A stretch of DNA of 64,000 nt from Orbicella franksi (taxonomy: Eukaryota), in the NCBI GenBank assembly GCA_964199315.1, contig OZ116698.1, forward strand, positions 12,772,001 to 12,836,000. The letters run 5' to 3'. Shown piece by piece: positions 55,715 through 61,375 of this stretch (positions are counted from its first letter, which is position 1; every line of letters begins with the position of its first letter). The notes under the pieces are model-generated. The model was not told the origin of the DNA. It ran no database searches and saw only the letters and a list, made by a program, of their open reading frames with translations. A program made the position numbers and the translations under genes.

Positions 55715-58710
55715 ATGCAGGGGGTGGTTAGAGGGAACACAAACTGGGTAGAATTGAGAGAGCAGCGAAGGAAAGAAAGGCAAGATGAGCTAGGAGTTTG
55801 TCGGATCAGAAGGATTGAAGAGGACCAAAACGCACAAACTCTTGGCTCTGGCTTCGTGGTTAAGGATTTGCCAATAATTGAAGGCCTTCCTTGCCCTTAT
55901 TGTCTGATATCAAGTGACAAAGTCTTTCCCAGTGACTGTAACATACAAAGTTATTACTTGGACTTTAGGAAGCTAAATACACAGAAGTTGAAAACAATCA
56001 AGTTAGAAGACATTGCTGGGAATACCCACATTACTCAATTTCCTGGCCTTGTTGTAATTCCCATCAACCCTTCTAAGAAATGCAAAAGAAATCAAAGCAT
56101 TTTTACTTATCGACCATTCAAAGTTGCCAGCGAAGGAGTTCAACCAAATGAGGACTTACTGTGTCATTTTGTAGACGATGGGCAGACAATATTTTCTGTG
56201 AAAGGGCTAACGCTGAGCCGATCAGGGACCATTCCTGTGTACCAACTCCATGAAGTCCACGAACATCCTTACAGAACATATGAAGAAGTTACTGGTAGAG
56301 GGGATCGTAAGCCCTATGGTGCTGCCATCTTAAAGCGTAGTAGCAATGAATTTATGGTTGCTGGAGCCCTGACCTTTAGAGATAATGATCGTCGCGACAT
56401 ATCTCCTGTGTTTTTCACAGGTAAGTATGTATAAAATTGCTAAAATTGTCAGATTCATTCAATTTACGATAAAACACAGTTGCCTGGCCTAATAACACTG
56501 AAACAATGGAACAGCCAAAATGGGGGAATGCCATAATGTAATTAACACTAGACAGACTTGTCTTATAACTTTAATTAAATGTCATTACATTTGGGATGTT
56601 AGTCAACAAGAGGTTGTCAGTTTATTTGTTGTGCCCTATTAATCTGGGTCATTCACCAGTGAATTTGAGCCCTCTCATTGAGTTACAAGTACAATACTTG
56701 AAAGACTTCCAAAAGCATGAGTCCTTTAAGATGCACGCAAATTGGCATGAGACTCTTTATGCTTAAAAGAAATGCGGCTCACGTTAACACTTTGCAATAT
56801 TCACATGTAACAACATTTTTAGTAAAAGAAAATCATTACTGAAATAACAACGAAAGAGAAACTAACCCTTTACTCAAAGCGAAGAAGATAACATAATCTA
56901 CCAAACTTAATCTGTTGAAGCCATGAAGAAGCAACTTTGCATTTGTAGTTTTCATGAATGACATTTCAAGCCACCTCAAGTCAAAACTTAGTCTGATAAC
57001 AATCATTGCCTTTTATAAGTGGTAACAAGTACAATTTCACCCCAGTGGCTTTCATTAAAAATTTTTATCTTTATCCGAAGTTCAGGTTTTGGAGTTTGTT
57101 AAAAATTATTCAGCATACACAGTTCCATTGAGGCTACCTTGAAGCTTTCTTCATGAAATTCCTTGCGCAACATCCACGGTTTGACACTCGCACAGCTGGT
57201 ACGCAATTTACAACAACTTCAACAAAGCAGTTTTTTCCCTGCAGAAAGGTCCATACTGAAGCTTCAAAGTAAATTCCATCTATGGGCTTCTAATTAAAAT
57301 CATGCAGAGAAGCTTGTTCACACACGAAAGTCAACAAAAATCTTATCTTTCGTCTTTAAACTATAAAGCACGACAGAGCACTTGGGTAGTTGTCGCCATT
57401 AAAAGCTCCAGTTCGTCTAGATGCAATCGGCATGTTTAATTAAATAAACATGTCTTCACAGCTTGTACTTTAAGATTGAGCCGTAATAAAATATTAGTAG
57501 GGACTTAAAGATACGTTACGGGAAGGTGCTACTACGGCTACTTTGGCTGTGAGGGACGAGGCTGACAATGGTGTTTTACCCGCCAAACTCGATCAAATGA
57601 TTAAGATTTTGCTGTACGGCAACGGTATGTGCAGTCTTTACGTGTCTTTACAAAAATGACTACTTTCAAGGAGACCAGAGATTATTCTACTTTCATAGGA
57701 AATAGGCTTGATTAATGACAATGATTTCCTTCTCCTGTATCCGTCTTACATCTCCCAGAACTCATATTTGCCTTTTAGAACTTGATAGAACCACCTGTGG
57801 CACCGCCTGTAATTTCAACCGCAAAACAAAATATAAACTCTGATATAAAAAAGCTCAATTTCAACACGTTCAGGTTGCTCATACAACGATTACGTGATAA
57901 ACCCGCAAATACAAAACTTTTGATCATAATAAATATATTTTGAACAGTTAAATAAATAATTATAGCTCAGATTAGTACATGCAAAGCTTTCGTATCTACG
58001 GTTATTCGGCCCAATACTAATATGACTGAATTGATCATCTCGCGGTTGGTGTTAAAATGGTTCAAGTTTTCTGTACAAATGACAAAGAAACAATGATCTT
58101 AAAACTGATTTTTATGATTGAGAACTTTGTCTTCAAACTAGGCTGTTCAAACAGTGAAAAAAACGTTAAAATGAGAAGTAAACAGCAGGCTTATACTTGC
58201 GTAGTGAAGAGTACGTGAAACCAGGCACTTTCCCGTAGTAGAAGGCAAGGCTACAGCGGGAAAGCTATACTGGTACACGCGTCATGACGTCACCGGAAGT
58301 GATCTTCACTATCTACCGCCGTACAACAGCCTAGCTGTACCATATCTTAAAGTCCCTAGTAATAGGTAATCATAGGGTTTCAAGTTCAATTTGGAATTAA
58401 TTAGCACGAGTGAGTTTTACAAAAACATGTTGCAAATTAATTCCAAATTGAATGAGAAAAACTGTACGATTACTTATTAATGATATAAACATGAAAAAAT
58501 TTGTGTGGAGAAAGTGCCAGAAGATCTTTCTTGAAGCCATTTTTCTCTCATTCGAGAAAACTTTTTTCAAAGTTTCCGCACAAAATTTTTGTCATCATTT
58601 TAGGTTATATCATTGGCTTAGAAAATTTCCTATTGTCTTTCAGCCAATCATAATCCAGAATTATGATGTGCAATTTGCACTAGTGTTACACGTTTTGCAC
58701 TGGTGTTACA

Positions 58711-58742
<32 letters not shown>

Positions 58743-61375
58743 TGAGTAATTTTCATATTTATTATTAAAACTTTAACTAGCTATGGCTTACGATAGGTTT
58801 AGAGTGGCAGTTGCTTCGAGGGTCAACCTGGAAGAAGTTTATCTCAAGATCAAATTTAACGCACCATCGCCAGGATTTGCGTTTCAGTAATGAGAATGTA
58901 CAAGTTCTCGGTGGGAATTTCTATGCAAGAATTTTTTTCTCAACAAGAATTTGGTTCTCGCCGGGAATACTACCAAGATTTTACCTCCCTGCAGGATTCT
59001 CACTGGGATCCTGGAGGAGATTTTTTTTTCTTGGTGGGATCCCAGCAAGTACAGATTTCTCGGCGAGATTCTTGCTGAGATGTACGAGGGGAATTTTTCC
59101 CGGGAAGGATCCCGCCAGGAAAACAGGCTACCTTGGTGGGATCCCAGCGAGTGCCAGGAATCTTGGAATACATTAAGAGAGGGAAAACTTCATTTTAGTC
59201 CAGCATAATTAGGAGCATAACACCTCCCATGGAGCATAATTTTCAGCATGGGCATCTCATAAACTAAGACCTAAAGCCCCCTCCAAAAAAACTAGGACCC
59301 AAGACCCCCTCCAAATCTCCAAAACTAAAACCTAAGACCCTCTCAGAATCTCAAAAACTAACAGACCTAAGACTTCCTCGGCATCTCAAAAACAAGACCT
59401 CGGGGAAAAAGACCTAAGACCCAAGAACAGGCTTTGTTGTATTACACCATAGTCAATAGAGGGGAATGGTTATGAAACCTGACAAAGTTCGTTGTTATAC
59501 GTTTTTGTTCGTGTTTTTGGCCTTGAACGTGCACAAAACACAATAGTTGTTTACTCAGTACTGAGGAACTAACCAATAGAAACGTGTTGGTTATGTAATT
59601 CATGTATAGCATACGAGCGCAAAACAAAAGATTTTGCACACCGGTGGACCTTCCAACATAAATCTTGGCATCTTAACTTTGTTTGCTCCTTTGATGTTTG
59701 CCAGACTTCATAACCAGTCCTCTCTATTGGGCCTGCTAAATCTGCGAGCCACGGTGCGAGCCATGCGAGTCATGCGAGTCATGCGAGCCATTTTTGCGAG
59801 TATTTTTTTTTTCAGTTGGTATGGGAGGTCGTCGACTTTTCACCAAGAAACATAGATCTCGCGCCCGACTATCACTAAGCTATCGCTATAAAGTGCCCGC
59901 CCGCCATCTTGAAAGCAGAGATAACCCTGGGGACGAGTACAACCTCGCTCCCAGGGTACTCTCTCTTTCCCTGGGAAATTAATTTTAAATTTAGCTTCAA
60001 AAATGCCTACAATTGTAATATTCCCAAAAGAAAATCCTAATCTCGCTTCGGTTACCAGAACTATTGCTGGTGCGGCAAATATGAAAAATGCTCTAAACAT
60101 CTGTGCATCGTGCCAAGTCTTGCGTCATAGAAATGGCTGCCCTGAGTGTGATGAATTTTTTTCTTTGTTTCACATTTTTGTTGTTTGGAGAAAATTTTGT
60201 CTATTCAAATCGCCCAGGATCTGCAAGAAATAAAAACAATGCATCAAAAATTGATTAAGGTTCAAGACTAAAGTAAAGAAAATTTTCTGAGAGAAACGTA
60301 CGGCTCCACCGCCCCACCGCTACTCGAATGGGTAGGTGAATGGTATCCATGGCACCTGTCATTCATTGATATCCACGTTGAAAATCATTCAAGAAAAAAG
60401 AGAACAGTACTTCAGGGCAACTCCATGTATTGGCGTCAAGAATGGTGAGTGAATGGCGTAATTTTAACAGGTTCGCTCTTTAGGGAATCAGAGTTATCAA
60501 AACTTTGTCGGTTGGCTGACTGCTGCATGTGGTTGTCTCTTCCCTTAGAATTTAAAATTGCAAGAATTTGATATTGCGATCTTATTCATTTTGTTCCGTT
60601 GCTCTTGTTCTTGTTCTCATGTGAATATAAATGTAACAAATAAAAAATCTTAACATTTGTTCTAGGGCTCGCATGACTCGCATGACTCGCATGGCTCGCA
60701 TGGCTCGCACTGGCTCGCCTTTTGGCTCGCATGGCTCGCTGGCTCGCAGGTTTATAAAACTCCTCTCTATTAACTATGATTACACCTACTGCCTTTTAAA
60801 AACATATTGCAACAGAGAGCTCATAGTTAAGTGTAATATTTTGACTCTACCTGTAGGCAACTTTATTTAAGTATTTTAGGTGTTGTTTTCAATGAGCCCC
60901 CACAGTAGCCATTTCTCTGAGAAACTGGCCTAGGTTCTCTTTTTAGGATTACCTTTGTCTATTGTTGCTGCAAGTGCTACCAATGGATACAGTGATCAAA
61001 ACCAAAGCACTGGAGAACCAGTGGAGAGAGTAAGAGAAATGTTAGAGGAGATGGGATTCACACCATGGGCTCGTTTGAATCTTCACATGAAAGAAGCATT
61101 GAACGCCTTTTTAGAATGTTTGAGCCATACATATCATTTAGCAGTAACATTATTACAGCAAGGTAGTTTAAGAATAACTGTTCAATTCCAAACTTTGAAC
61201 AACCTCGAACTGTTGTGGAGTGATTACCAATCACGTATCCTTGATGAAAAAGCTGAGAAATATCTGGTGACAGACGACATTAAGAATAAACTTAATGTGA
61301 AGGCCGTAGCATTGAAAACAGAGATTCTTGAACAGGATTACTTGGCTTGCAAGCGTTCTCTTGAGGCCATCTCAG
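55715..61375 (+). CDS. 5' part of a multidomain protein: trypsin-like (probably inactive) domain exon 55715-56420 joined to a TRADD-N-like domain exon 60947-61375; continues downstream
   Basis: Exon 1 ends with ag|gtaagt in phase 1. Exon 2 starts ttttag|GA in phase 1 and ends ag|gtgagt in phase 1. Exon 1 motifs: VCRI..LGSGFVV..YCLISSDKVF..LVVIPI..PYGAAIL..VAGAL. Exon 2 motif: QQGSLRITVQFQTLNNLELLWSDYQSRILDEKAEKYLVTDDIK..LKTEILEQDYLACKRSL. Intervening exons cannot be excluded. Confidence 0.7.
57499..58357 (+). mobile_element. Internally deleted PIF/Harbinger-type element
   Basis: TIRs AGGGACTTAAAGATA / TATCTTAAAGTCCCT with a 3-bp flank agt/agt. A decayed transposase N-terminus (MTTFKETR..LL....GLINDNDFLLLYPSYISQN) lies at ~57655-57760. 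Confidence 0.65.
59742..60750. mobile_element. Element bounded by inverted arrays of a 9-bp repeat (catgcgag(c/t) / (a/g)ctcgcatg)
   Basis: ctgcgagccacggtgcgagccatgcgagtcatgcgag.. at 59742-59800 and ..ctcgcatgactcgcatggctcgc..tggctcgcag at 60667-60750. Confidence 0.65.

Follow-up and report, generated by a model that had tools for sequence, protein, structure and literature searches.

What is encoded at positions 55,715 to 61,375 of a 64,000-nt stretch of Orbicella franksi DNA (hereafter the window, G000:C1:12772001-12836000 of a eukaryotic genome of 497 Mb), where a trypsin-like exon is followed by a TRADD-N-like exon, and could the product work as a protease decoy? A first-pass annotation of the window had proposed that all three catalytic residues of the protease are substituted, that the two exons are spliced in phase, and that the product is the N-terminal part of an NLR/STAND-type protein which could bait microbial proteases or inhibitors. 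The motif strings that it quoted from the two exons are all present in the frame given there. In this work we found that the locus is a real, transcribed coral gene encoding a small two-domain protein, a catalytically dead trypsin fold followed by a TRADD-N domain. It corresponds to the Orbicella gene LOC110049013, and its product is 99% identical to Orbicella faveolata XP_020610443.1 (381 aa). The exon 1 stretch is present in 14 RNA runs. The 56420->60947 junction (GT..AG, 4526 nt skipped) was detected in RNA contigs of runs X9, X10 and X13, which come from three studies, as well as in a 2694-nt JGI metatranscriptome contig (L030) and in the RefSeq model P0073, which bears out the predicted junction and the co-transcription of the two exons. 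Both ends of the junction are in phase 1; the splice is therefore in frame. The parts of the gene are as follows:

55543..55714, + strand: 5' untranslated region (UTR), minimum extent; contiguous with exon 1, contig L030 being aligned from 55543
55715..56420, + strand: coding exon 1, 235 codons plus 1 base, GTAAGT donor; supported by RNA, fold and family conservation
56421..60946, + strand: intron 1, 4526 nt, GT..AG; RNA runs X9, X10 and X13, contig L030 and RefSeq protein P0073
60947..61375, + strand: coding exon 2, linker plus DEDD2-clade TRADD-N; domain core at ~61081-61374
61375..61386, + strand: read-through of the exon 2 donor, codons Gly-Glu-Cys and TAA at 61384-61386; end of the 381-aa form
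61387..62762, + strand: 3' UTR of the read-through form, minimum extent; L030 is continuous over 60946-62762

An in-frame TAG (55709-55711) lies two codons 5' of the ATG at 55715, and direct reading of the sequence revealed no hydrophobic signal sequence at the N-terminus. In the exon 1 product an N-terminal basic helix (residues 9-26) precedes the double beta-barrel of the PA clan (trypsin fold), which lacks the triad. Exon 2 is preceded by a pyrimidine tract and AG before 60947 and followed by a GTGAGT donor after 61375.

The AlphaFold2 model of the exon 1 domain, built on an alignment of 47 relatives, reached a pLDDT of 92.4 and a pTM of 0.89 and displays the chymotrypsin topology of two six-stranded beta-barrels. 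Foldseek comparison of this model with PDB gave at least 500 matches at E <= 0.001 (best E 3e-8), and among the matches listed 50 of 50 are S1 proteases. After re-alignment with VIA-align all 999 of 999 chains scored Z >= 8; the top matches, with Z of 13-14.7 over 155-185 residues, are exfoliative toxins, MucD, DegS, V8 protease and HtrA1, and the SMIPP-S-I1 structure 3h7o is also found among the structural matches. By ESM features, the closest clusters are without exception Trypsin_2, Peptidase_S39 or Trypsin. AlphaFold DB places the family in a cluster of its own (TM 0.91 to A0A2B4RP99), with all other trypsin-like clusters at TM <= 0.58. Sequence profiles did not detect the relationship: Pfam assigned no family to exon 1 or exon 2 and gave only chance matches (E ~0.1, a DUF), exon 1 was unmatched by Trypsin (PF00089) and Trypsin_2 (PF13365) at E <= 1, and a profile of the 47 relatives searched against all PDB sequences returned no protease and just two chance matches. 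The canonical coral Trypsin_2 genes reach 61-85 bits with the same Pfam search. On the strength of the model we conclude with high confidence that exon 1 encodes a trypsin/chymotrypsin double barrel and that the resemblance is not due to chance; the nearest structures to the predicted fold are bacterial-type S1B/S1C enzymes.

Next, we examined the catalytic positions. The motifs read earlier as trypsin-like strands fall at residues 44-49 (GSGFVV), 63-71 (CLISSDKVF), 110-117 (PGLVVIPI) and 199-206 (KPYGAAIL) of exon 1, and the triad positions were assigned to the following codons:

55919..55921, + strand: Lys69, at the catalytic His position (hhalign against E. coli DegS and DegQ, low probability)
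56045..56047, + strand: Gly111, at the catalytic Asp position (motif SGLVVIP against DLALL; strand 112-117 in the model)
56315..56317, + strand: Tyr201, at the nucleophile Ser position (family profile aligned by hhalign with canonical Trypsin_2, RKPYGAAIL opposite GNSGGPVL)

K69 and Y201 were placed by weak profile alignments and G111 by motif, without structural superposition; the hhalign alignments of the family with DegS, DegQ and canonical coral Trypsin_2 were short, had a probability of 1.5-5.7%, and were used just for placing K69 and Y201. CL-x-T-S-x-K-V, the family motif, is the counterpart of v-v-T-N-x-H-V in HtrA/DegS. The DegS alignment sets D99 opposite the catalytic Asp, a placement that was rejected: D99 is unconserved and the model places the GLVVIPI strand at the Asp strand. 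In the 47 aligned sequences, column 69 is K in 27 and His is outside its six commonest residues; column 111 holds G in 43, N in three and S in one, with no Asp; column 201 varies among Y, L, D, H and R and conserves no Ser. Only two residues are invariant in 47/47 family members: Gly202, next to Tyr201, which corresponds to the oxyanion-hole Gly, and Cys150 (codon at 56162-56164). Exon 1 thus carries no canonical His-Asp-Ser triad, nor one with a Cys nucleophile, in agreement with the substitutions and the trypsin fold first suspected. Since the triad is lost, canonical serine protease activity is not possible. Judged from the aligned columns, the whole family consists of pseudo-proteases in which the triad was lost before the family diversified, and exon 1 is no recent casualty.

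The same genome contains at least eight canonical single-exon Trypsin_2 open reading frames (ORFs), and His, Asp and Ser are intact in 5/5 of those aligned; the tools used here therefore do detect active enzymes in this genome. The triad-bearing ORFs (C14:2113869-2126411, C7:7308711-7312345, C2:20781867 and C15:668876) are clustered and encode 430-707 aa, with the Trypsin_2 domain C-terminal, 200-400 N-terminal residues lacking a Pfam match, and a bacterial-type look.

Exon 1 might still be an enzyme that uses non-canonical residues, e.g., Cys150, which is invariant and is followed or preceded by an adjacent His in 16 of the 47 sequences. We regard this as highly improbable: in the model Cys150 lies inside beta-strand 148-155 of the second barrel, away from the nucleophile loop, and the nucleophile-loop position itself is variable. 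To our knowledge, no PA-clan protease has its nucleophile at such a strand position.

Exon 2 carries GSLRITV, LELLWSDY and LKTEILEQDYLACK. BLASTP pairs it at 40% identity (E 3e-18) with a domain in the next-but-one gene; that domain falls just short of the Pfam TRADD-like_N cut-off, with 23.6 against 23.7 bits. The exon 2 domain itself did not match PF20694 at E <= 0.01; 11 of its 13 aligned homologs did (best E 3e-12). Its ESM features led to TRADD-like_N clusters (0.95). The exon 2 model has a pLDDT of 88.9, and in an unbiased fold search TRADD (1f2h_A) ranked first among 48,161 chains, a weak match (Z 5.8, 110 residues aligned) that is level with other ferredoxin-like folds; Foldseek of the same model against PDB gave no significant match. 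Ser73 of the GSL strand (61165-61167) is invariant in 13/13 family sequences and may be the conserved TRADD-N Ser at the interaction interface that is stressed by Kaur, Iyer, Burroughs and Aravind (eLife 2021, PMC8195603). Supplement file 18 of that work lists XP_020610443.1 as TRADDN-DEDD2 with no other domain. Several lines of evidence indicate that exon 2 encodes a DEDD2-clade TRADD-N domain; the TRADD-N part of this protein has already been published, and its N-terminal 235 residues were unrecognised there. We counted at least 79 TRADD-N exons in the genome, which fits the 17-168 copies reported for cnidarians (Kaur et al., 2021, PMC8195603). A predicted complex of the exon 1 and exon 2 domains scored 0.02, which weighs neither way.

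Does the gene continue into a large sensor past the window? Two transcript forms were found. In the read-through form, L030 and X9 record 31 cross 61375 unbroken and the protein ends in Gly-Glu-Cys-stop at 381 aa; P0073 (the RefSeq model) and P0126, which end in ...ISGEC, represent this form. In the spliced form (61375->64643), X10 record 9 (exon 1, exon 2 and 50 nt more) and X1 record 7 leave at 61376. The additional 50 nt match position 644 of L004, where an AG acceptor precedes them (L004 and L007 are the DNA past the window end; L004:644 equals 64644 in extended coordinates). RNA covers the first 50 nt alone of this downstream exon, and the contigs cannot rank the two forms. The target exon (L004:643-808) and the next exon (L004:1307-1560; Pfam Death, 20.9 bits) encode a Death domain. 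When the exon 2 frame is carried on into the target exon, it runs for 23 codons and then meets a TAA (L004:711-713) that precedes the Death-coding part; the spliced form is probably 401 aa long. Splicing of exon 2 straight to the Death exon at L004:1307 would be out of phase and was rejected; the actual target is the cassette exon at L004:643. RefSeq starts the next gene (479 aa, a weak Death match plus MOV-10_Ig-like) at an ATG 57 nt past the TAA.

The cassette belongs to a 2124-bp unit that is present in five tandem copies of 96-99% identity at L004:529-10000 (extended ~64529-74389). Each unit holds a two-exon Death cassette with the same in-frame TAA, and the next RefSeq gene begins inside the array. 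The TAA is found in 5/5 tandem copies and in the copy visible in an independent O. faveolata assembly. The older O. faveolata assembly is gapped at the array. Paralogous cassettes at window position 29156 and at L007:7315 are open at the TAA codon; in the copy at window 29156-29400 (within 26431-33368) Ser (TCA) replaces the TAA, and the frame of linker and Death is open.

In neither form does a Death domain stand in the same frame as TRADD-N, as it would in a TRADD-like architecture, and in either form the protein ends shortly after TRADD-N. The expectation of an NLR/STAND-type protein with effector domains past 64 kb thus failed: the read-through form stops three codons after exon 2, the spliced form reaches its TAA after 23 codons, and the extension of the gene leads to a Death cassette behind a stop. 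No NACHT, NB-ARC, TIR or kinase domain was found in the ORF, and no NACHT/NB-ARC among the downstream ORFs scanned, where the annotated neighbours are Death plus MOV-10_Ig-like and HEPN_DZIP3 plus TRADD-like_N. A long isoform that unites pseudo-protease, TRADD-N, Death and a MOV10-like helicase, by read-through of the stop, an alternative acceptor or a TAA-free allele, would make the window the head only of a larger protein. Such an isoform is favoured by runs X10 and X1, in which exon 2 is joined to the cassette exon, by the two cassettes that are open at the same position and by the cnidarian TRADD-N/Mov10 fusions in Kaur et al. (2021, PMC8195603). It is nevertheless very unlikely given the TAA in all five copies and in the independent assembly, the two separate genes in RefSeq, and the transcript contigs, none of which extends past 50 nt of exon 3.

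To place the gene among its relatives, an exhaustive HMMER search was performed with the dead-protease domain, which yielded 63 representatives. All of the named relatives come from stony corals (Orbicella, Oculina, Stylophora and Pocillopora). Longer relatives have the dead-protease domain at the N-terminal end, with Death (one or two copies), OTU, or OTU plus Death after it. P0055 (2162 aa, chitobiase repeats) was a spurious weak match and was discarded as no family member. An ortholog on another coral contig has the same exon order, with exon 1 81% and exon 2 87% identical and the two exons 7.8 kb apart. The genome itself holds two more distant paralog pairs. Each has a pseudo-protease exon that ends in a phase-1 donor and, 11 or 19 kb downstream in the same orientation, a TRADD-N exon; these TRADD-N exons, with a phase-1 acceptor and a GTGAGT donor, are the ones most similar to exon 2. 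When the first 72 family proteins were searched by BLASTP with exon 2 and the Death ORF, neither found a match, and the TRADD-N partner is therefore specific to Orbicella-type genes among the annotated members. A word-indexed search with the TRADD-N part recovered just the gene itself and one exon-sized ORF of another coral, and PADLOC found nothing in six family members.

Pairwise ratios of nonsynonymous to synonymous substitution rates (dN/dS) were 0.3-2.0 between orthologs, where substitutions are few, and 0.15-0.59 between paralogs. From these values the gene appears to evolve fast yet under some constraint. The high ratios, 1.3 and 2.0 in two comparisons, raise the question whether the gene is a decaying remnant whose Death part has been cut off by a stop, which drifts toward a pseudogene and whose transcripts are by-products of the locus of the downstream gene. 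The in-frame TAA between TRADD-N and the Death cassette would fit such decay, as would the spliced form, a candidate for nonsense-mediated decay. Weighed against them are an ORF kept intact in both Orbicella assemblies, a metatranscriptome contig diverged by ~2% (DNA) and a coral 81-87% identical, the recovery of the stretch in 14 RNA runs, a dedicated read-through 3' end with a UTR of at least 1.4 kb, and the dN/dS of 0.15-0.59 in the more divergent paralog pairs. Decay is, in our estimate, quite unlikely.

The same fast evolution (exon 1 dN/dS 0.6-1.3 between orthologs) is what a decoy might be expected to show. In that proposal the dead fold mimics a host protease for microbial inhibitors or proteases, and TRADD-N relays the event. 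In favour of it, the pseudo-enzyme is conserved and occupies the variable end in a family of adaptors of immune type, and the canonical Trypsin_2 genes with intact triads in the same genome could be the mimicked targets. A mimic would be expected to resemble its model, whereas exon 1 shares no detectable sequence similarity with those canonical proteases beyond the fold; moreover, the protein is neither fused to nor paired with an NLR and no receptor domain is fused to it. No result obtained here favours a decoy in particular. A decoy function is unlikely, though it is the rival that we take most seriously.

We consider it reasonably likely that the gene encodes a non-catalytic binding head on a TRADD-N/Death-fold adaptor that has lost its Death domain. 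Rather than a large NLR-type sensor, the protein probably represents an adaptor of the coral's cell-death and immunity network, which has expanded. It would be a small cytosolic protein and a member of a lineage-specific coral expansion of TRADD-N/Death-fold adaptor genes. Because the former active-site blocks stay the most conserved parts of the family, the head may serve as a binding module that holds a partner protein or peptide without catalysis, with TRADD-N as a protein-interaction switch that engages other members of the network; the protein would then modulate Death-fold/TRADD-N signalling in the manner of a truncated or pseudo-enzyme regulator. Since paralogs and relatives suggest so, the ancestor may have carried head, TRADD-N and Death in one chain; a stop codon now divides the TRADD-N and Death frames, though splicing still joins exon 2 to the cassette. 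Two points weigh against this reading. The binding role is deduced from conserved blocks that also make up the core of the fold, and their conservation may be purely structural; and the high dN/dS between orthologs fits relaxed constraint as well as fast immune-type evolution.

How does such a protein compare with known ones? Trypsin folds with a substituted triad are found in the inactive S1-fold proteins haptoglobin, azurocidin, the arthropod serine protease homologs and scabies-mite SMIPP-S. These are secreted S1A proteins that bind instead of cleaving and are recognisable by Pfam Trypsin, whereas the coral domain has neither a signal peptide nor a Pfam match and sits in an intracellular adaptor. 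cFLIP, a pseudo-caspase with DED adaptor domains, likewise puts a dead protease fold on cell-death adaptor domains, and by this analogy alone a regulatory, non-catalytic role seems plausible; the dead fold of cFLIP is a caspase and that of the coral protein belongs to the PA clan. An active sister protease with the same adaptor domains was not found in this genome. Vertebrate TRADD has a TRADD-N domain followed by Death, which in the coral is mirrored at the DNA level by the Death cassette joined through splicing, but its TRADD-N is of another clade, it has no N-terminal protease fold, and in the coral gene Death is out of the TRADD-N frame.

The gene fits among the DEDD2-clade TRADD-N expansions of marine invertebrates and shows the pattern described for those of cnidarians (Kaur et al., 2021, PMC8195603): TRADD-N and a Death-like part stay constant, the flanking domain varies, paralogs stand in tandem and retrotransposons lie nearby. 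These expansions differ in that their variable domains are HEPN, Macro, PARP, GT4 and helicase, and here a dead PA-clan fold; moreover, the Death part is cut off here by a stop codon. The supplement of the same work contains a cyanobacterial protein of Moorea sp. (NEO94808.1; Trypsin+TRADD-N+EAD7+TM), in which the same two superfamilies occur with trypsin first. The two superfamilies are also combined in Branchiostoma (amphioxus) as TRADDN-DEDD2+Trypsin, in the reverse order of the coral gene. Sequence profiles do detect the Moorea and Branchiostoma trypsins, unlike exon 1, and active effector function is predicted for them. No mention of LOC110049013 or XP_020610443 was found in the main texts of the literature. 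Our searches turned up no earlier description of a death-signalling adaptor that carries an intracellular PA-clan pseudo-enzyme of bacterial type, and the dead PA-clan fold is a new kind of variable domain in the TRADD-N expansions that was missed by Kaur et al. (2021, PMC8195603).

The coral TRADD-N/Death-fold genes are among the largest and least understood expansions in animal innate immunity, and their variable domains are thought to set what each protein senses or does. To these the present work adds an unannotated domain family, a PA-clan pseudo-protease that is limited to stony corals among its named members and lies ahead of Death, OTU or TRADD-N. We tentatively suggest, as a doubtful but wider possibility, that this private stony-coral family of intracellular trypsin-fold pseudo-enzymes forms a ligand-sensing head for Death-fold, TRADD-N and OTU proteins, that it may sense pathogen proteases or inhibitors, and that it may descend from trypsin-like effectors of bacterial conflict systems coupled to TRADD-N/Death-like adaptors. 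The locus may also illustrate gene remodelling, in which a stop splits an ancestral head, TRADD-N and Death chain into two splice-joined genes beside a five-fold tandem duplication. With its 381 aa the protein is tractable for binding and structural study of a dead protease in a death-signalling adaptor.

Several further elements were observed around the gene. A neighbour (L007:1909-4549 plus L007:7315, 32-37 kb past the window) comprises a DZIP3-like HEPN head (E 8e-40), TRADD-like_N and an open Death-cassette exon, a layout as in the studied gene with a different head domain. On the + strand 6-17 kb upstream of the gene, at 38468-44833 and 47971-49803, lie a BEL/Pao-type long terminal repeat retrotransposon (DUF1759, Peptidase_A17, integrase and DUF5641) and a separate reverse-transcriptase ORF, which match the published proximity of TRADD-N genes to retroelements (Kaur et al., 2021, PMC8195603). 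Between the two groups of retroelement ORFs, an ORF of 193 aa at 45774-46355 matches Pfam Promethin (34.5 bits). Inside intron 1, several stretches at 57500-60700 show very high contig depth (up to thousands) with many loose ends in 4/4 RNA runs; these are probably dispersed repeats that are transcribed elsewhere and do not form part of the gene.

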